A stretch of 64,000 nt of DNA, taken from the sequence record NC_042013.1. One strand, written 5' to 3'. Below the pieces are notes generated by a model that was not told the DNA's origin, did not search any database, and worked only from the letters and a program-made list of their open reading frames with translations. The position numbers and the translations under genes are program-made. Positions 13,905 through 47,742 of the stretch are shown here, one piece after another. Every line of letters starts with the position of its first letter. Position 1 is the first letter of the stretch.

Positions 13905-14023
13905 CTTGAGTGGCAGGGCTCGAACCTGCGACATTCTGATTACTTTTAGAGGCTTCAGAATCGAACTGAATAGTTACCTTTGCCTCTTACAGTCAGACGC
14001 TCTACCAACTGAGCTACACCCAA
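13905..14023 (-). tRNA. interrupted tRNA, Asn-type body, 46-nt insertion in the anticodon loop
   Basis: TTGGGTG/CACTCAA acceptor, perfect D arm, TCTGA/TCAGA anticodon stem, ATGTC variable loop, GCAGG-TTCGAGC-CCTGC T arm; removing 13988-13943 gives loop CT-GTT-AA; no CCA. Confidence 0.85.
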
Positions 14024-18411: not shown

Positions 18412-18798
18412 TTATTTTATCTCAAAAAAAGCAACCCTGATTTTTGTGTCAACGACCTCTTTCTTAAAATAACGATAAAGTACGTTGCGCAATTTATTAT
18501 CCCCAACATAGCTTTCTACATTAGTGATTGCCAAAAAAACATAATCATCAATGAGTGGGGGGATGATACGAGTAAAGGGAGAGGGCGATAGTCTGCCGCG
18601 ACTGACCAAATCCATAGTTTCCATATGATCAATGAATTTACCCATTTCAATTTTAATCACACGAACATCCGTGTTTTTAAAATGTTCGTGTAGATCAGCT
18701 AGTTGGGTTTCCAACTTAAAATACCCATCCGACTCAATAAAAGAAACTTCGCCGGAATTAACAATGTGATCCAACAGACCGGTAAAAGTAAATTCCAT
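18412..18798 (-). CDS. hypothetical protein (possibly distant family C)
   Basis: 128-aa ORF with AAGGAG RBS. Confidence 0.75.
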   Translation of the reverse strand: MEFTFTGLLDHIVNSGEVSFIESDGYFKLETQLADLHEHFKNTDVRVIKIEMGKFIDHMETMDLVSRGRLSPSPFTRIIPPLIDDYVFLAITNVESYVGDNKLRNVLYRYFKKEVVDTKIRVAFFEIK

Positions 18799-18856
18799 CT
18801 AAATCTCCTTTAATGTATTTTGCTATTTTCAAAAAATACACTATTCAAAAATAAAG

Positions 18857-19654
18857 TCAACCCTTTTTTATATTCCTCCAAAAATTAACGAACTCAGTAT
18901 AAGAGTACTCATCATCTAAAGAGTTATCCCAAGTTAAACGCCATCCCATTTCACGTTTCTTAAAAACCCCGTAATCACTATGAAAAATACGAAGTTCAGG
19001 ATTAGGATGATTATACTGTGTCGTCAAGAAAAACGTGGGGTATGATTGAATAGAGGTATGATCAAAATCAAACCAAAATAATACACCCTCATCAACCCTA
19101 ATATGTTCAACCTCCACAGGGACATCCATATCCAAAATGATAAAACCATTACCATATAAAGACGCAAGGGAAATATAACGTTCTTGTGACACTTTCACAC
19201 GTGCAGCACAAATATTGACAAATGACATTCGATTCTTAGAATTATAACATTCGTCAAATGGATACAATTTCCAAAAGTCATTAAAGCTTGTAACGTTTCG
19301 CGTTATATCAGACGAATGCCACATTCGGTAGATTCCTAACCCACCAAGAGAAATTTTCCCGAAATGACCATTTTCAATTCTAGCATATGCGGAGATATCA
19401 TAAATACTTTCAAATTCATGAAGATATGATGTCAAAACATATTCATCCGGTGAAGCAGTCGCCCGATATTTTTTTAATTGAAATGAACGAAAAAGATACC
19501 CACCGTTGTACTCTTCCGCAAAGGCACCATCCTCAATTTCAACATCAAGGGCAACAACCTCACAGCCGTACTTTAGCTGAAACATCAACTGATCCGAATC
19601 ATCCATTGGGATAATACGATATTTGATATGAGGATGATTTTCAAGGATTGTCAT
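18857..19654 (-). CDS. family D protein, paralogue of 16902-17714
   Basis: HPHIKYR, YGCEVVAL, FIILDMDVPVEVEHIRVDEGVLFWF, FNDFWK and FVNFWR. Confidence 0.85.
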   Translation of the reverse strand: MTILENHPHIKYRIIPMDDSDQLMFQLKYGCEVVALDVEIEDGAFAEEYNGGYLFRSFQLKKYRATASPDEYVLTSYLHEFESIYDISAYARIENGHFGKISLGGLGIYRMWHSSDITRNVTSFNDFWKLYPFDECYNSKNRMSFVNICAARVKVSQERYISLASLYGNGFIILDMDVPVEVEHIRVDEGVLFWFDFDHTSIQSYPTFFLTTQYNHPNPELRIFHSDYGVFKKREMGWRLTWDNSLDDEYSYTEFVNFWRNIKKG

Positions 19655-20744: not shown

Positions 20745-20915
20745 TTAAAGAATACCGGGAACGTATTTCAGTAAACTCAATATCGCGATGATAACAATAA
20801 TAAGCTTGGCGATCTTAGATGCAGGGTTTCCTAATCCAAGCATATCAACCAAATAACAACACAATACCGCAACCAAAAATACAATAAGAATAGAAATCAA
20901 AACGGATACCGTCAT
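20745..20915 (-). CDS. 56-aa two-helix membrane protein
   Basis: read manually: MTVSVLISILIVFLVAVLCVYLVDMLGLGNPASKIAKLIIVIIAILSLLKYVPGIL; GGAG RBS; terminator 20714-20739 downstream. Confidence 0.7.
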   Translation of the reverse strand: MTVSVLISILIVFLVAVLCCYLVDMLGLGNPASKIAKLIIVIIAILSLLKYVPGIL

Positions 20916-20974
20916 AATAAATCTCCAATTAACCTATATTAACTTTTGATTAGATCATTTGGTTCCATCAGACA

Positions 20975-21007
20975 TAAAAAAACTCCCCACAAAGGAGGAG
21001 TCTTTTT
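20975..21007 (-). terminator. intrinsic terminator ending the 21-kb RNA unit
   Basis: ACTCC-CC/GG-A-GGAGT hairpin followed by T-tract on minus strand. Confidence 0.65.
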
Positions 21008-21010
21008 GCT

Positions 21011-21441
21011 TGGCATGAAGGTAGCCGAAAGTGTGAGGATCGAACTCACGCATACCGGCTCAAAACGCAAATGCTATGCCGGGTGCTCTACCACGTACTG
21101 ACTTTCACAAATCCACCTTAATAATGCTTTTCGTTTTTGCGTTCAATCACTGGGCCTGTTTGGCATTGCACCAACTCAATGTTTTTAAAGCCTTTGCGTT
21201 TGTTACCCGCAAACCTAATGACAAAACTTACTAAGCATTCTATATATGAACCGCTACTCACTTTCCTCTGAGCTAACTTTCGATAAAAGATTTTCGAACT
21301 AAAAGCATTTCCCATCCTAACGACCTACTAAGGGGTATCCGTAGATAATGCCTTGGTACTAGTCCTTTAGAACTTCTGTGCGTCAATCCCAATTCCCTCA
21401 AGGGGTTTCAGTCAAGAACTGCCGTAATCCGAAAATCTTTA
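21011..21441 (-). ncRNA. candidate large ornate ncRNA (about 430 nt) ending in a tRNA-like domain
   Basis: own promoter and terminator; 11-bp AAAGATTTTCG/CGAAAATCTTT and 12/13-bp AATGCTTTTAGTT/AACGAAAAGCATT long-range helices plus many local hairpins. Confidence 0.6.
21025..21107 (-). tRNA. tRNA-like element with 18-nt expanded anticodon loop
   Basis: TGAAAGT/ACTTTCG acceptor, degenerate D arm with TGGTA, CCGGC/GCCGG stem, GTGAG-TTCGATC-CTCAC T arm, no CCA. Confidence 0.7.
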
Positions 21442-21444
21442 GGT

Positions 21445-21473
21445 AATATACGGGACACAAACCCGTTTGTCAA
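21445..21473 (-). promoter_or_regulatory. sigma70-like promoter of the 21-kb RNA
   Basis: TTGACA-17 nt-TATATT. Confidence 0.75.
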
Positions 21474-21562
21474 CAACTATTTTTATGTTTTTTACGAAAA
21501 ATATTTTATTTACTTTATACATATGTTATTATGTAGTTTAATAAAATACATGGTAATTTAAA

Positions 21563-22327
21563 ATGCATAATCGTAAGTCAAAATACACAAAAGAATTATT
21601 AGAACCAATCGTAAAAGAATCTCATTCAATGGCTACGGTTTTAAGGAAATTAAATTTACACCCTACAGGCGGATGTCATCAATATCTAAAAAATAAAATA
21701 ATCAATCATGGAATAGATATGTCGCATTTCACCGGCCAAGGGTGGAATAAAGGTTTAACAGCCGAAACCTCCGATGGAGTTAAAAGATCGCGTGATGCAA
21801 ATGCATATACTGATGAACAAATTTTATGTAAAAATTCTCCGCAAACAAGGTCAAGCCAGCTAAAATCTTTGATGATCAAAAACGGAAGAGAATATATATG
21901 CGAAAATGGTCATCCAGCAGAATGGATGGGACAGCCAATGACATTACATATTGATCATATTAATGGCGAGCGTACGGACAACCGCTTAGAAAACTTACGG
22001 TTCCTATGCCCTAATTGTCATCAACAAACGGACACGTGGGGTAGCAGAAAAGTAAAGTATAAATCAAAACGAGAAACTAAAACATCCACACCTAAAATTA
22101 AAAAACAATATACGTGTATAGAATGCGGAACGGTATCGCATCGGCGTGGTCGATTTTGTAGTAAAGAATGTGTCAATATCAACAGAAACAATAGATATCC
22201 ATTAGGGAATGTTCCAAAAGAAGATATCATTGCGAAATTAAACGAACTTGGGAATAATTATCTACAAACAGGTAAATTCTTCGGTGTATCTGATAACGCA
22301 ATTAGAAAGCGTTTGAAAACAAAATGA
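21563..22327 (+). CDS. free-standing HNH endonuclease with C-terminal Cys4 finger/HTH
   Basis: LHIDHINGERTDNRLENLRFLCPNCHQQT; CIECG...CSKEC. Confidence 0.9.
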   Translation: MHNRKSKYTKELLEPIVKESHSMATVLRKLNLHPTGGCHQYLKNKIINHGIDMSHFTGQGWNKGLTAETSDGVKRSRDANAYTDEQILCKNSPQTRSSQLKSLMIKNGREYICENGHPAEWMGQPMTLHIDHINGERTDNRLENLRFLCPNCHQQTDTWGSRKVKYKSKRETKTSTPKIKKQYTCIECGTVSHRRGRFCSKECVNINRNNRYPLGNVPKEDIIAKLNELGNNYLQTGKFFGVSDNAIRKRLKTK

Positions 22328-22328
22328 A

Positions 22329-22418
22329 TGGTACGGGTGGAGGGACTTGAACCCCCAAGCCTGCTAAAGAGGCGCGAGTACCTAAAACTCGTGCGTAGAC
22401 CAATTCCGCCACACCCGC
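22329..22418 (-). tRNA. tRNA-Leu(UAG)
   Basis: long variable arm, loop TT-TAG-GT, encoded CCA. Confidence 0.93.
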
Positions 22419-22458: not shown

Positions 22459-22530
22459 AGCGGGTAGTGGGGACCGATCCCACGGCCTCTGACTTGGAAG
22501 GACAGCGCTCTACCATTAAGCTATACCCGC
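22459..22530 (-). tRNA. tRNA-Gly(UCC), atypical T-loop
   Basis: GCGGGTA/TACCCGC acceptor, U73, loop CT-TCC-AA, T-loop ATCGGTC, 3' CAA instead of CCA. Confidence 0.8.
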
Positions 22531-25104: not shown

Positions 25105-25213
25105 TGGTGCCTCAGAGGGGATTCGAACTCCTGACCTGCGGGTTATGAAAACTTTCCTCGAAACCTACCGAAAATTTTCAAAACCGCTGCTCTACCAACT
25201 GAGCTACTGAGGC
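25105..25213 (-). tRNA. interrupted tRNA, Met(CAU)-type, 33-nt insertion in the anticodon loop
   Basis: GCCTCAG/CTGAGGC acceptor, A73-CCA, perfect D arm, TTCGAAT T-loop; removing 25180-25148 gives loop TT-CAT-AA. Confidence 0.85.
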
Positions 25214-30384: not shown

Positions 30385-32745
30385 GTGAGTACTAACCCTA
30401 CTGGCGGATATGTTCGTGTTGTCGGTTCTACTAAGAATGACAGTGATACACACAAAAGTTTAATCAATTTATTTGATATGAATAAAGGCGTACTTACCTT
30501 TAAAGCTCTTGAAGCTGGTGATGGTATTACATTAACACTTGTTGACGCAGACCCACGTGTTAATGATGGCCGTAAAGTTATTAGAATTGATTCTAACGGT
30601 GGAGGAGGAACAGCAACTGGTAGCTCTTGGTTGAATTATGTTGGTCCACCGTCAACAAGTGATGGTATTGACAACGATTTTAGTTTTGATCCTGAAACAG
30701 GTACGATTTATATTAAAAAAGACGGAGAGTGGAGTTCTATTGGTTTTCTTACAGGTACTAAAGGTGATACCGGACCTGTTGGTCCAGTAGGTCCAAGCGG
30801 TCCACGAGGAGTTAAAGGTGATAAGGGGAATGACGGTACTACTGGTGTTGCAGGTCCAATCGGACCCCAAGGGATTGCAGGTCCAACTGGTTTAGATGGC
30901 GCTGCGGGTATTCAAGGCCCAAAGGGTGATAAGGGGGATAATGGTCCAATTGGCGAGAACGGTTCACAAGGACCACAAGGTATTCAAGGTATTGCTGGAC
31001 CACAAGGATTACAAGGAGATGTTGGTCCCGCTGGAAATCAGGGAGAAACCGGAGCTACCGGACCACGCGGTCTTCAAGGAGAACAAGGATTAGCAGTTGT
31101 TCCTGACGAATATGGTATTTTGAACGAAACTAAAATTACAGAAATAGAAACATCTGGTATTGACCGTGTATTGTTGATAAGAGCTAACGGTGATGAACGT
31201 ACCGATACGGCAAATCCTGCATCTATTTCCGGTAATATGTCAAGTCATTTGGTTCGTTTCAATTCTGGTAGTAATCAATGGATGGATTTTGGACCAATAA
31301 CGGGGATTAAAGGAGAACAAGGCCCACAAGGCGAATCTGGTATTGCCGGTCCTTCCGGTTCTGCTGGTATCCAAGGTATTCAAGGTGTTGAAGGCCCACA
31401 AGGTATCCAAGGTGAAGCCGGTATTCAGGGAGGACGAGGAGAAACTGGTCCTCAAGGTGAAGTTGGTGAGATTGGTCCTGCTGGTCCACAAGGCATCCAA
31501 GGCCCAAAAGGTGATAAGGGAGATACCGGAGAAAAAGGTTCCGATGGTAAAGGCTATGAGGCTAATGAATTTGGAATTTTTGATGAGACTAAAATCTCTG
31601 AAATCGAACAACTTGCAGTCGATTGGACGTTTCTTATAACCGAGGGTGGCGATCAACGATTAAATAATCTCGTTCCAGCTGACATCGCAGGTGATCGTAG
31701 TGGGAGCCTCGTTGGATATGTTGCTGCTGATAATAAGTGGTATAGTTATGGCAAAGTAACCGGTATTGAAGGACCACGAGGAACGGCTGGCATTAATGGT
31801 ACAAACGGACGTGATGGTCGCGATGGTCGAGATGGCAGAGATGGACGTGACGGTCTTCAAGGAAGAGACGGTCTTCAAGGTCAAACCGGAGTTGCAGGAC
31901 AACGCGGTGAAAACGGTATTGACGGAACAATTGGGCCACGAGGCCCACAAGGCGAAGCTGGTATTGACGGAAATAATTTGAATGTTAAAGGTCACGTTCC
32001 AACTATTGATGACTTGCCAACAGAAAACTTACAAGACGGTGATGCTTTCCTCGTTGCGGACGTATTTTATATTTACTACGATGGTCAGTGGAGAGGGACT
32101 GGTATTGTTCAAGGTCCAAAAGGAGCCAAAGGCGATACCGGAGATATAGGTCCACAAGGACCGCAGGGAGATATTGGTCCTAAAGGCGATCAAGGCGTTC
32201 CCGGTCTACAAGGAATACCCGGTATTCAAGGAGAACAAGGTATTCAAGGTCCAAAAGGTGAGGATGGTCAACAAGGTTCGCCGGGTGAAAATGGTACTAA
32301 TGGTTCCTCTGTAGAATTTATTAACGGAGTAGAGGTAATAAACGGAGAGGTCAATCTTACCGCTGCAAACGTTGGTGCTCGACCAGATGATTGGACACCT
32401 ACGTGGGATGAAGTACGTGATAAACCAACGTCTGCCACAATCCCTCAATTAGTATATTCTGATCTTCTAGGTTCAAGAGCAAATAACATTTGGTATACAA
32501 ATGCTGGGCAAAGAGAACGTATTGTAAATGTTAGCACGAACTACATAACTTCAAGTTCATCATCTATGATACAAATGCGTGCTACAGGGACGACCGAACC
32601 AGTATTCTCTGTTAGAGGGCAAGCAGCAGGAACTGGCTCTACAAACCAAGTCATGCAAGCACACGTCCCGGCAGGGTGGCAGTATAGGTTTGTACCGGGG
32701 ACGAATCGTCAAATTAACACTTGGTTTGAGGGTGATTACGTATAA
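30385..32745 (+). CDS. collagen-like (Gly-X-Y) tail fibre/whisker protein
   Basis: four G-X-Y tracts, two related globular spacer domains, C-terminal beta domain (RERIVNVS...VPAGWQYR); TAAATA at 30345. Confidence 0.85.
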
Positions 32746-45756: not shown

Positions 45757-47742
45757 TTACTTATAAACAACCTCAAGGCTTTTGGTTTCTGCGGAATTTC
45801 GAACTTCCAAATCCCCACCTTTACCCTCGATTACCAATTCGGCAATGATTGGTTCAAGGTTAGCCTGAATATAACCCGGCAAACCACGTGCTCCAGTTGC
45901 TGGATCATAATGATGTGCACAGAATTCTTCAATCGTTTCGTCTGTAATTGAAAGGTTGATACCATTTTCAACATACGTAGAAATAAGATCGTTAAATTCG
46001 CGGCGAATGATCTTTGCGATATGTTCCGCCTTCAATGCATTGAAGCAAACGATATTCTGACGACCAGCAAAGCGGTTCAGGAATTCGTTGCGGTAAGTAT
46101 CGTTCAAATCAGCGATAGCCAATTCAGATGCTTCTTCGAATGTCATTGACGTATCCAAGAAACGGGGTTGTCCGATATTGGTAGTCATAATGATAATCGA
46201 GTCGCTAAAGGAAACAACGCGACCTACGTTATCCGTCAAACGTCCATCAGAAAGAATTTGAAGGAAGATATCGAAAATAACTGGATGAGCCTTTTCGATT
46301 TCATCAAAAAGAAGAATTCGATTAGGGTTAGAACGCATTGCGTTAGTAAGTGCACCACCCATTTCAAAGCCTTCGAAACCGGGAGGAGAACCGATCAACT
46401 TAGAAACAGAATGCTTTTCCATATATTCTGACATGTCGAAACGAGTCAGTGCCTTCTCAGAGTCAAGAAGTGCAAGGGAAAGAACCTTTGCAATTTCTGT
46501 TTTACCCGTACCAGATGGTCCGAGGAACATAAACGACGCTTGTGGCTTATCCTTATTACGATTGCCAACGCGTGCTACCTTAATAGCATTTGCAAGTTTC
46601 TTGACAACGTGATCCTGACCAAAGATACGACCTTTAAGGATATCCTCGAGATTACGAAGCTTGTCTTTCTCATCCTCGCCAAGCTTATTAGCGGAGATAC
46701 CGGAAATTTTAGCAAACTCACGAAGTACGTGGGCGCGGTCAAGTTTAAGAGACGCGTTGATGTCAAGCTCGATTGCGTGATATTTGTCCGCGTTTTCCTT
46801 AACATATTCCTCAAGCTTTCGAATATCCGTTCGAACGCGAACGACTTCGGCAGGTTCTGAGAACTGATAAGTTGACGGTTCTTTTGACGCAAGAATTTCT
46901 GCAATCTTATCTTCAAGTTTATGAATTTCGAGTTCGGCATCTCGTTGTTCACGATACAGAACATTCATTCGTTGCTTTGTTTCTGGATCGATATTCTTAT
47001 GTGCTTCAAGAGCGTAAGATGACATAGCACGATCAAGGAGAGTTGTCGTACGTTCCGGTTGTGCACGAGAAAGACCTGGGTCATTAACTCGATACTTAGA
47101 TGTCATTTCAATTGCAGCGCGTTTCGCGTCGTCGTCAATTGCAATCTTGTAATATTCAGAAATACGTACTGCAATATTGTCAACAATCTTTTCAAGTTCG
47201 CCGTTCTTCGGTTCATCAACCAGAAGCATCGTAAATGATTCACGAATGTTTCCATGATAGGAAAGAACATATTCAAGATTTTCTTCTCGCACTTCGAAGA
47301 TAACCTGTGTAGTATCTTCCTTTACCATTGAGATAAGGGCATTGATGAAATGGGACGCGCCATTTGCTCGTGCATTTTCAATAAAGTCCTTAGTATTTTC
47401 TACGATAAGAACAGAATTTGGCGTACGCTTAAGAACGTTTACAATCTTGGTAAATTCAGAATTGATATATTCCATATCACCGGTCGCAAACAATGTAGTG
47501 TAATCAAACCAATAAAGGCGCTTTGAAATAATATCAAATGGTGCAGATGGGTCTTTCTTCGCATACTCAAGGCCAATGCAAAGTGTCGAACAACCAACGC
47601 CACCGGGACCAACGAGAAGAACAGAATTTGCCTTCTTGCGTGTGAGGATAGAGAACATACGTTCCATTTCATCTTCCATCCCGATAAGGGCGAAATTCGG
47701 AAACTTCTTAATATATTCAGAGCCTGTAATCAAATAAGACAT
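45757..47742 (-). CDS. clpB: ClpB-like Hsp100 AAA+ ATPase lacking N-domain, NBD1 degenerate
   Basis: NBD2 GPSGTGKTE, RFDMSEYMEKHSVSKLIGSPPG, LFDEIEKAHP, GARGL; NBD1 GPGGVGCS; coiled-coil middle domain. Confidence 0.9.
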   Translation of the reverse strand: MSYLITGSEYIKKFPNFALIGMEDEMERMFSILTRKKANSVLLVGPGGVGCSTLCIGLEYAKKDPSAPFDIISKRLYWFDYTTLFATGDMEYINSEFTKIVNVLKRTPNSVLIVENTKDFIENARANGASHFINALISMVKEDTTQVIFEVREENLEYVLSYHGNIRESFTMLLVDEPKNGELEKIVDNIAVRISEYYKIAIDDDAKRAAIEMTSKYRVNDPGLSRAQPERTTTLLDRAMSSYALEAHKNIDPETKQRMNVLYREQRDAELEIHKLEDKIAEILASKEPSTYQFSEPAEVVRVRTDIRKLEEYVKENADKYHAIELDINASLKLDRAHVLREFAKISGISANKLGEDEKDKLRNLEDILKGRIFGQDHVVKKLANAIKVARVGNRNKDKPQASFMFLGPSGTGKTEIAKVLSLALLDSEKALTRFDMSEYMEKHSVSKLIGSPPGFEGFEMGGALTNAMRSNPNRILLFDEIEKAHPVIFDIFLQILSDGRLTDNVGRVVSFSDSIIIMTTNIGQPRFLDTSMTFEEASELAIADLNDTYRNEFLNRFAGRQNIVCFNALKAEHIAKIIRREFNDLISTYVENGINLSITDETIEEFCAHHYDPATGARGLPGYIQANLEPIIAELVIEGKGGDLEVRNSAETKSLEVVYK

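Follow-up and report, generated by a model that had tools for sequence, protein, structure and literature searches.

A probable structured RNA gene built on a tRNA-shaped frame in Agrobacterium phage Atu_ph07

The locus, its relatives and the limits of the transcript

The window analysed here, a stretch of 64,000 nucleotides (nt) from sequence record NC_042013.1, contains a region at about 21,011 to 21,441 for which a first-pass annotation, made from the letters alone, had proposed a stand-alone structured RNA near transfer RNA (tRNA) genes. The query region was found to be 100% identical to Agrobacterium phage Atu_ph07 (MF403008.1, 490 kb), record positions being window positions plus 310,000, and no GenBank annotation lies under the RNA region of this phage. 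The window holds most of the tRNA genes of Atu_ph07, 21 of them called by ARAGORN and two insert-bearing ones detected by Rfam. The RNA gene lies on the minus strand, as do the tRNA genes of the window, and is located just downstream of the Gln-Gly-Leu tRNA genes (22613-22329), i.e. at the end of that cluster. The features of the locus are collected in Table 1.

Table 1. Features of the RNA unit and its immediate context (window coordinates)
Feature	Position	Strand	Remarks
sigma-70-type promoter	21445..21473	-	-35 TTGACA 21473-21468, -10 TATATT 21450-21445, 17-nt spacer
5' domain, ~155 nt, three-armed	21286..21440	-	folding z = -2.2 and compensatory pairs
closing helix P1	P1a 21440-21425/21301-21286; P1b 21423-21420/21307-21304; P1c 21418-21414/21313-21309	-	
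hairpin P2	21392-21385/21374-21367	-	carried by junction after P1
arm P3, tip variable	21364-21351/21333-21322	-	carried by junction after P1
3' domain, 257-259-nt tRNA-shaped frame	21025..21283	-	RNAalifold consensus and generic frame scan
insert at anticodon-arm position, ~190 nt	21063..21249	-	four hairpins
hairpin hp1	21255-21234	-	loop AUAUAUA
long hairpin hp2	about 21227-21141	-	
hairpin hp3	21124-21088	-	GNRA loop GUGA or GUAA
hairpin hp4	CCGGC 21082-21078 with GCCGG 21059-21055	-	loop length varies
T arm	21033..21049	-	U55, C56, G53:C61 present
3' trailer and intrinsic terminator	20976..21024	-	stem 20997-20983, then U-run
open reading frame of 65 amino acids	21118..21315	-	judged not a gene
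HNH homing-endonuclease gene	21563..22327	+	Pfam HNH_3/HNH; context, outside RNA unit, between tRNA-Leu and RNA

Relatives of the unit were reached through two neighbouring proteins of 265 and 56 amino acids (aa), which were searched in the ENA and Logan assemblies and had relatives there at 73-99% identity on contigs that proved syntenic. The RNA unit was present in 10 metagenomic contigs of Atu_ph07-like phages, giving nine distinct sequences with Atu_ph07 included, and in the four relatives measured first the RNA region was 91.6-98.4% identical. Three other routes led to Atu_ph07 alone: blastn against 50,697 phage records gave the phage itself as the sole match, exact 21-23-mers from the T arm and D arm occurred only in Atu_ph07 within IMG/VR and not at all in the JGI metagenomes, and an IMG/VR scan seeded with a neighbour protein of 470 aa again returned only Atu_ph07.

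A promoter and an intrinsic terminator, both of which had been proposed from the sequence of Atu_ph07 and were recovered here, bracket a predicted transcript of about 460 nt. The promoter, TTGACA-17-TATATT, matches the consensus at 11 of 12 positions and is the top promoter-like site within 3 kb, so placed that transcription would start at about 21440-21436. Its hexamers are unchanged wherever the contigs cover them and six spacer positions vary; in the relative L006 a single base differs just upstream of the -35 element. The insert-bearing tRNA genes of the window have a similar promoter-like sequence: 25213 is preceded by a complete TTGACG-17-TATATT, and 14023 by a TATATT -10 element at the least. 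At the other end of the unit, the terminator stem has been rebuilt in L006 and L026 through compensating changes into a longer hairpin, CUCC(C/U)CC...GGGGGAG, with a different loop.

Two domains and their conservation

The predicted transcript can be divided into two domains. The 5' domain is closed by helix P1, about 25 base pairs (bp) in total, at the foot of which stands the perfect 11-bp helix that had been pointed out earlier (21440-21430/21296-21286); it is present, and extends to 16 bp if G-U pairs are counted. Among the relatives, pair 21421:21306 in P1b passes from C-G through U-G to U-A and pair 21356:21328 in P3 from C-G to U-A. The tip of P3 reads UAUC-UACG-GAUA in most sequences and UAUCU-GCAA-AGAUA in L006 and L020, a swap of a UNCG for a GNRA tetraloop, and in L026 the tip is cleanly deleted, with a perfect 8-bp stem remaining. 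The first-pass annotation had also crossed the 11-bp helix with a 12/13-bp helix (21309-21297/21135-21123), which implied a large pseudoknot. The second helix is indeed present in Atu_ph07, but it is broken in relatives by two independent uncompensated substitutions, one of which is the compensating partner in P1b. Since this helix overlaps P1b and P1c, and 21306 covaries with 21421 in the competing P1b, the pseudoknot was not retained; nor was the proposed local stem GCG-GTTCA/TGAACGC, which uncompensated substitutions break in two lineages.

The 3' domain starts 3 nt after the 5' domain and has the frame of a class I tRNA. A tRNA-like domain had been noted at this end of the RNA, and its presence was borne out, but the 5' partner of its acceptor does not lie beside the T arm: in the RNAalifold consensus, the 3' strand ACUUUCG (21032-21026) pairs with CGAAAGU at 21282-21276, some 250 nt upstream. 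The resulting 7-bp acceptor is followed by U8, A9, a D arm (21273-21256) in which GCUCA pairs with UGAGU and the loop carries GG, corresponding to G18 and G19, and then by A26. Acceptor and D arm are invariant in all nine sequences, and the distal acceptor strand is perfectly complementary. Position 73 (21025) is G or A and can pair with U21283, extending the acceptor to 8 bp. Upstream of the T arm, GCCGG precedes a variable loop of 5 nt, of which the first U and the last C (C48) are kept and the middle three positions change. The T arm itself exists in two forms, GUGAG-UUCGAUC-CUCAC in six sequences and AUUGG-AUCGUCC/AUCGUUC-CCAAU in L005, L006 and L026, related by three double compensatory pairs with none broken and by a swap of loop positions 54/58 from U...A to A...U. 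An A at position 54 is also seen in the unusual T loop, AUCGGUC, of tRNA-Gly(UCC) in the window (22460-22530, minus strand), which resembles the variant T loop of these three relatives.

The domain shares with a class I tRNA the 7-bp acceptor, U8, the D stem of 4-5 bp with GG in its loop, a variable loop of 5 nt with C as its last nucleotide, and the T-arm nucleotides U55, C56 and G53:C61. It departs from one in having about 190 nt in place of the anticodon arm and no conserved 7-nt anticodon loop, in lacking an encoded CCA and in having either G or A at position 73. A generic frame scan, which required a 7-bp acceptor, U8, a D arm with GG and a T arm with U55, C56 and G53:C61, recovered ordinary tRNAs and a 118-nt insert-bearing tRNA; the 257-259-nt frame came up in the window as well as in each of the four relatives included, and no other frame exceeding 120 nt was found over about 190 kb on both strands. 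A covariance model built from the frame (R2) recognises ordinary tRNAs by skipping inserts.

The insert stands where an anticodon arm of 17 nt would be. Within hp3, the hairpin 21113-21100 keeps a GNRA loop throughout, GUGA having become GUAA in three sequences, and the U-run in the loop of hp4 counts 4, 5 or 6 nt across the relatives. GCCGG (21059-21055) has two candidate partners, 21253-21250 and 21082-21078, and a loop-loop pairing of 8 bp between 21070-21063 and 21201-21194 is possible; in both cases all the positions are invariant.

Conservation is distributed unevenly along the unit. Over the 155 nt from 21305 to 21151, which are fully identical among the first five sequences, the nine sequences show a single substitution (21192 G>A, in L020), which turns a G-U into an A-U pair. 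Compared with L005 and L006 respectively, Atu_ph07 is 100% and 91% identical in the 5' domain, 100% and 100% at 21283-21151, 93% and 95% at 21150-21063, and 66% and 62% at 21062-21025, the segment holding the variable loop, T arm and acceptor 3' strand, so that this last segment is 62-66% identical against 91-100% for the remainder of the RNA. The flanking genes are 77-96% identical to those of L005 and 81-88% to those of L006. That 155 nt should carry one substitution while neighbouring genes differ by 10-23%, their identity being about 77-90%, implies an important and specific partner. Compensatory changes were seen in five pairs, three in the T arm and one each in P1b and P3, and the covariation check on collected homologues thus came out in favour of a fold. 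At the level of sequence, a promoter that is kept while its spacer drifts, a compensated terminator, covarying pairs and tetraloop swaps are marks of a folded functional RNA.

Folding statistics gave a more mixed picture. The long helices are beyond chance expectation: the perfect 11-bp helix was reached in 7 of 200 dinucleotide shuffles, and of the 12/13 helices, three of which occur in the real sequence, two or more were found in none of 200. By folding energy the 5' domain (first 158 nt) reaches z = -2.2, the RNA as a whole is unremarkable (z = -0.86) and the central insert of 184 nt folds no better than shuffled sequence (z = +0.6).

This last value is one of several points that weigh against the overall reading of the locus. 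Helices hp1, hp2 and hp4 are predicted on thermodynamic grounds, because the interior of the insert is invariant, and RNase P cleavage, CCA addition and stability are likewise predictions, made solely from the shape of the frame. All the homologues are close relatives, and some of the near-identity of the core may stem from recent recombination between these mosaic phages and not from selection. No counterpart of the RNA was found by nhmmer or a covariance model in the 40-kb tRNA region of Sinorhizobium phage Phosso, the closest isolate in the phage collection. Furthermore, the syntenic site has no copy of the RNA in L016 (1-395) or L017 (1-271), both of which retain the downstream gene of 56/57 aa; in these two it is either dispensable or sited elsewhere, and the RNA gene is therefore a presence/absence module. 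Set against the conservation and covariation in nine sequences, these points leave us confident that the locus is a genuine structured RNA gene with a tRNA frame, stand-alone and with its own promoter and terminator as first proposed. The full statement, in which tRNA-type processing and a scaffold function are included, we hold to be probable with distinctly less assurance.

Known RNA families and alternative readings

Rfam 15, applied to 20900-21560, gave no match at gathering thresholds, and up to E = 10 it gave just three chance-level matches to small nucleolar RNAs (snoRNA) or small RNAs (sRNA), of 11-15 bits. Membership of GOLLD, ROOL, OLE or HEARO was rejected on this basis, none of their covariance models matching up to E = 10. 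As regards a HEARO/OMEGA RNA, the HNH gene is moreover on the opposite strand, absent in L007 and L008 and replaced in L005, L006 and L020. RNase P RNA was rejected since there was no Rfam match up to E = 10 and the motifs GAGGAAAGU and ACAGAA, while present, stand in the wrong order, and a group I intron in a tRNA gene since Rfam Intron_gpI gave no match up to E = 10. The tRNA model RF00005 (cut-off 29 bits) likewise gave no match here, whether run at gathering thresholds or opened to E = 10; it scores the window's two insert-bearing tRNAs at 55-57 bits. Similarity to typed tRNAs was uninformative as to the isotype of the frame. The RNA of about 420 nt is thus a new family, matching none of the known large RNAs tested, and of the two possibilities first raised for it, a relative of GOLLD and ROOL or a new class, it is the second that survives.

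A divergent transfer-messenger RNA (tmRNA), in which an RNase P-cut tRNA-like domain would enter stalled ribosomes while the insert supplies a short reading frame, was considered very unlikely. The general shape is that of tmRNA (SsrA), which also combines a tRNA-like acceptor/T-arm module with a large structured insert; that of Atu_ph07 is possibly mRNA-like, and its RNA would be processed by RNase P. A candidate tag frame, GCA AAG GCU ... CAG UGA, occupies 21198-21147 on the minus strand with 16 codons from GCA. Its sole two substitutions (21192 and 21150, both G>A) are synonymous, but they are equally explained as changes from G-U to A-U in helix hp2. When its threshold was set to 80%, ARAGORN called a tmRNA at 21296-21024 with the tag AKALKTLSWCNAKQAQ; however, at this setting its calls are noise (10 in the window, 35 in 40 kb of Phosso), and at the default or 90% thresholds it found none. 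No Rfam tmRNA family matched, even at E = 10. Pair 3:70 is an invariant A-U in the nine sequences and not the G-U required by alanyl-tRNA synthetase, and the tag lacks the hydrophobic end usual in degrons. Atu_ph07 has genes for ClpX, ClpA, ClpP and ClpB, and in L020 the RNA comes directly after a ClpP gene, but SmpB is not listed in the published gene table of the phage. Phage-encoded tmRNAs are known in huge phages (PMC7162821, PMC12484599), and the tmRNA reported in the relative AP-J-162 (PMC11242549) was counted in favour of this reading. Lacking G3:U70, and having an atypical candidate tag and a canonical D stem, the Atu_ph07 RNA is nevertheless unlike tmRNA.

A similarly small probability was given to an ordinary tRNA gene at the 3' end (21107-21024), with an anticodon-loop insert of 11 nt and a leader of about 330 nt before it. 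At this site ARAGORN, run with intron search at its default threshold, does call a tRNA-Ala(AGC) interrupted by an intron of 11 nt; the local CCGGC/GCCGG stem has no mismatch and does not vary among the sequences, and the phage has other insert-bearing tRNA genes. However, the local 5' strand of the acceptor loses pair 2:71 in three relatives, in which G2 has become A, and it lies in a hairpin where the changed base belongs to the GNRA loop (GUGA to GUAA), whereas the distal strand is invariant and perfectly complementary. ARAGORN reads the anticodon as that of Ala, Lys or Glu, differing from one relative to another, the loop is not constant in length, and the gene receives no score from the Rfam tRNA model. 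The supposed leader is conserved best of all and shows covariation. Bases needed to close an anticodon loop vary as well between relatives (UG to CA, G to A, and a U-run of 4 to 6). With variable anticodon-loop nucleotides, a shifting ARAGORN isotype and no Rfam tRNA match, the Atu_ph07 RNA thus appears not to decode as a tRNA.

It is highly improbable that the RNA is the precursor of a decoding tRNA with anticodon CAU, from which a giant intron of about 185 nt would be removed by self-splicing or by whatever system deals with the short tRNA inserts of this phage. The tRNA frame is complete, UUCAU comes after the 5' strand of the anticodon stem, and the phage has a tRNA-Thr and a probable tRNA-Asn with inserts at 35|36; Agrobacterium itself carries a group I intron in a tRNA gene, which was also counted for this reading. 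In opposition to it, Rfam gave no group I match at E = 10, no register combines nucleotide 26 and U33 with a canonical 7-nt loop, and the would-be 3' half of the loop differs among relatives. The supposed intron is invariant while the T arm of the supposed exon is 62-66% identical, the reverse of what is expected of an intron, and no relative has an uninterrupted version, unlike tRNA-Thr.

Very little probability remains for a small protein gene, or for the debris of a decaying tRNA pseudogene without RNA function. The 65-aa reading frame, described at the outset as weak, is present and open in all nine sequences, but its substitutions are mostly non-synonymous (six against one synonymous) and AGGA abuts the AUG without spacing, which leaves no usable ribosome-binding site. 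As for debris, tRNA-like fragments do occur in such clusters, for example in Phosso, but debris would not exceed the neighbouring genes in conservation, nor show five compensatory pairs, tetraloop swaps and a preserved promoter and terminator. The Phosso element (L004:22230-22310) is unannotated, lies about 170 nt after tRNA-Met and has a CAU loop, a good T arm and an encoded CCA. Its D arm is degenerate, and it escapes both Rfam and ARAGORN. Least probable is a member or distant relative of GOLLD and ROOL, the kinship first suggested, for these are likewise large structured phage or prophage RNAs beside tRNA genes (GOLLD can embed tRNAs), with function unknown, but neither a sequence nor a structure model matches in Rfam, at gathering thresholds or up to E = 10, and the Atu_ph07 RNA is smaller (about 420 nt) and is organised on a tRNA frame instead.

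The insert-bearing tRNA genes of the window were also re-examined. In L006 (1415-1490) the orthologue of the published tRNA-Ser(TGA) of 109 nt (25108-25213, minus strand) is an uninterrupted tRNA-Thr(UGU); the Atu_ph07 gene has 33 nt inserted precisely at the junction of anticodon positions 35 and 36. L007 (3471-3580) has an unrelated insert of 38 nt at the same site, and neither insert is long enough to be a group I intron. The published tRNA-Tyr(GTA) of 119 nt (13905-14023, minus strand), with orthologues at L005:11420-11537 and L007:16436-16553, has a class I variable loop and an insert of 46 nt after CUGU and before UAA. This insert sits at 35|36 like that of tRNA-Thr; it does not differ among three relatives and has a hairpin resembling a T arm within it. 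A joint change (G/A to A/U) is seen at positions 26 and 44 of the gene. If spliced like the Thr gene, the gene would probably be a tRNA-Asn(GUU); the published account of Atu_ph07 (PMC6102473) reports two missing isoacceptors, Thr and Asn. Complementarity of the hp2 loop (GCGGGUAACAAAC) to the anticodon arm of spliced tRNA-Thr was considered, with an extended match in Atu_ph07 only, and was dismissed because relatives differ in the tRNA stem but not in the loop.

Between tRNA-Leu and the promoter of the RNA (window 21500-22330) lies a hot spot for mobile genes across Atu_ph07 relatives: it holds an HNH gene in Atu_ph07 and L021 and an open reading frame of 169 aa in L005 and L006, is empty in L007 and L008, and in L020 has a ClpP gene directly upstream of the RNA. 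Elsewhere, L007 has a TnpB/Cas12f-like open reading frame (OrfB_IS605) at 18449-19648, where Atu_ph07 has none. In the window itself, 30385-32745 (plus strand) encodes a protein of 786 aa that contains collagen triple-helix repeats and has been described in print as a tail fibre, and 45757-47742 (minus strand) a ClpB-like AAA+ protein; ClpX, ClpA and ClpP are in the published gene table.

Comparison with T4 RNA C and possible function

The nearest known analogue of the Atu_ph07 RNA is not GOLLD or ROOL but T4 RNA C (species 1, rnaC), the role of which has been unknown for decades (PMC3014915, PMC9697503). RNA C and RNA D (species 2, rnaD) lie at the distal end of the T4 tRNA cluster and on the tRNA strand, as does the Atu_ph07 RNA, and both loci are beside a homing-endonuclease gene, the order being Gln-Leu-Gly-...-segB-Arg-rnaD-rnaC in T4 and Gln-Gly-Leu-HNH-RNA in Atu_ph07. 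Seven members of RNA C from five genera were collected, and a covariance model (R1) was built from them. Their fold has a covarying acceptor-like stem formed from both ends, a T arm and hairpins between, with compensatory change in 10 pairs, and the canonical T arm directly precedes the acceptor 3' strand, as it does in the Atu_ph07 RNA. RNA C differs in its length of 139 nt, the lack of a D arm and two U-U mismatches in its acceptor-like stem, whereas the Atu_ph07 RNA has a domain of 257 nt with a canonical D arm, a 5' domain of 155 nt and its own promoter and terminator.

Homology between the two had been suggested by motifs shared to the eye (GAGGAAA, GAGUAGCG and GGC-UUUAAAAA-AUUGAGU), and was rejected. 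Model R1 misses the Atu_ph07 RNA region with default filters and with filters off. In the reciprocal comparison with R2, RNA C scores 3.5-6.8 bits, below many ordinary tRNAs and no better than random tRNAs, and pairwise similarity stands out for T4 only (z = 2.9), three other genera falling below 1. Since both covariance models failed and the similarity is T4-specific and outside the conserved positions of the family, the Atu_ph07 RNA is best described, by analogy, as an architectural and positional counterpart of T4 RNA C at three times its size, and not as a demonstrable homologue. In Escherichia phage G4507 (L015:265-358), the 3' part of a T4-type RNA C gene carries a GenBank annotation as a tRNA-Lys(ttt) of 94 nt, which shows how tRNA-framed RNAs get mislabelled.

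On the reading of a structured RNA with a tRNA frame, the frame would make the transcript a substrate for the tRNA maturation machinery. RNase P would cut at 21283/21282, trimming of the 3' end would follow, and CCA would be added by the phage's own CCA-adding enzyme, gp18, which Atu_ph07 encodes (PMC6102473). The frame would then provide a stable L-shaped scaffold on which the invariant insert, as the working part, may be presented to a conserved partner in translation or tRNA metabolism, and the 5' domain would either remain attached or be released as a second RNA. A bolder proposal, which we regard as unlikely as it stands, would make the RNA the founding member of a natural 'tRNA-scaffolded' class of functional RNA in jumbo phages, with a new activity in the insert. 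The frame would then recruit maturation enzymes and possibly EF-Tu or the ribosome, and the RNA might act as a tmRNA-like, ribosome-entering molecule that is not charged with alanine, or as an RNA cofactor that removes the 35|36 inserts of tRNA-Thr and tRNA-Asn.

The analysis corrects the genome record by adding an RNA gene that had gone unannotated and by pointing to two tRNA genes whose isotype was probably misassigned. That phage tRNA clusters hold stable, tRNA-like RNAs without a known purpose has long been recognised, from T4 RNA C and RNA D, and the locus extends this theme to a distant jumbo-phage lineage in a larger and better defined form. Because Atu_ph07 can be cultivated on A. tumefaciens C58, its RNA can be deleted, probed and pulled down, and if the proposal of a tRNA-scaffolded class is true and T4 RNA C works alike, this would give the first functional handle on that 50-year-old orphan.

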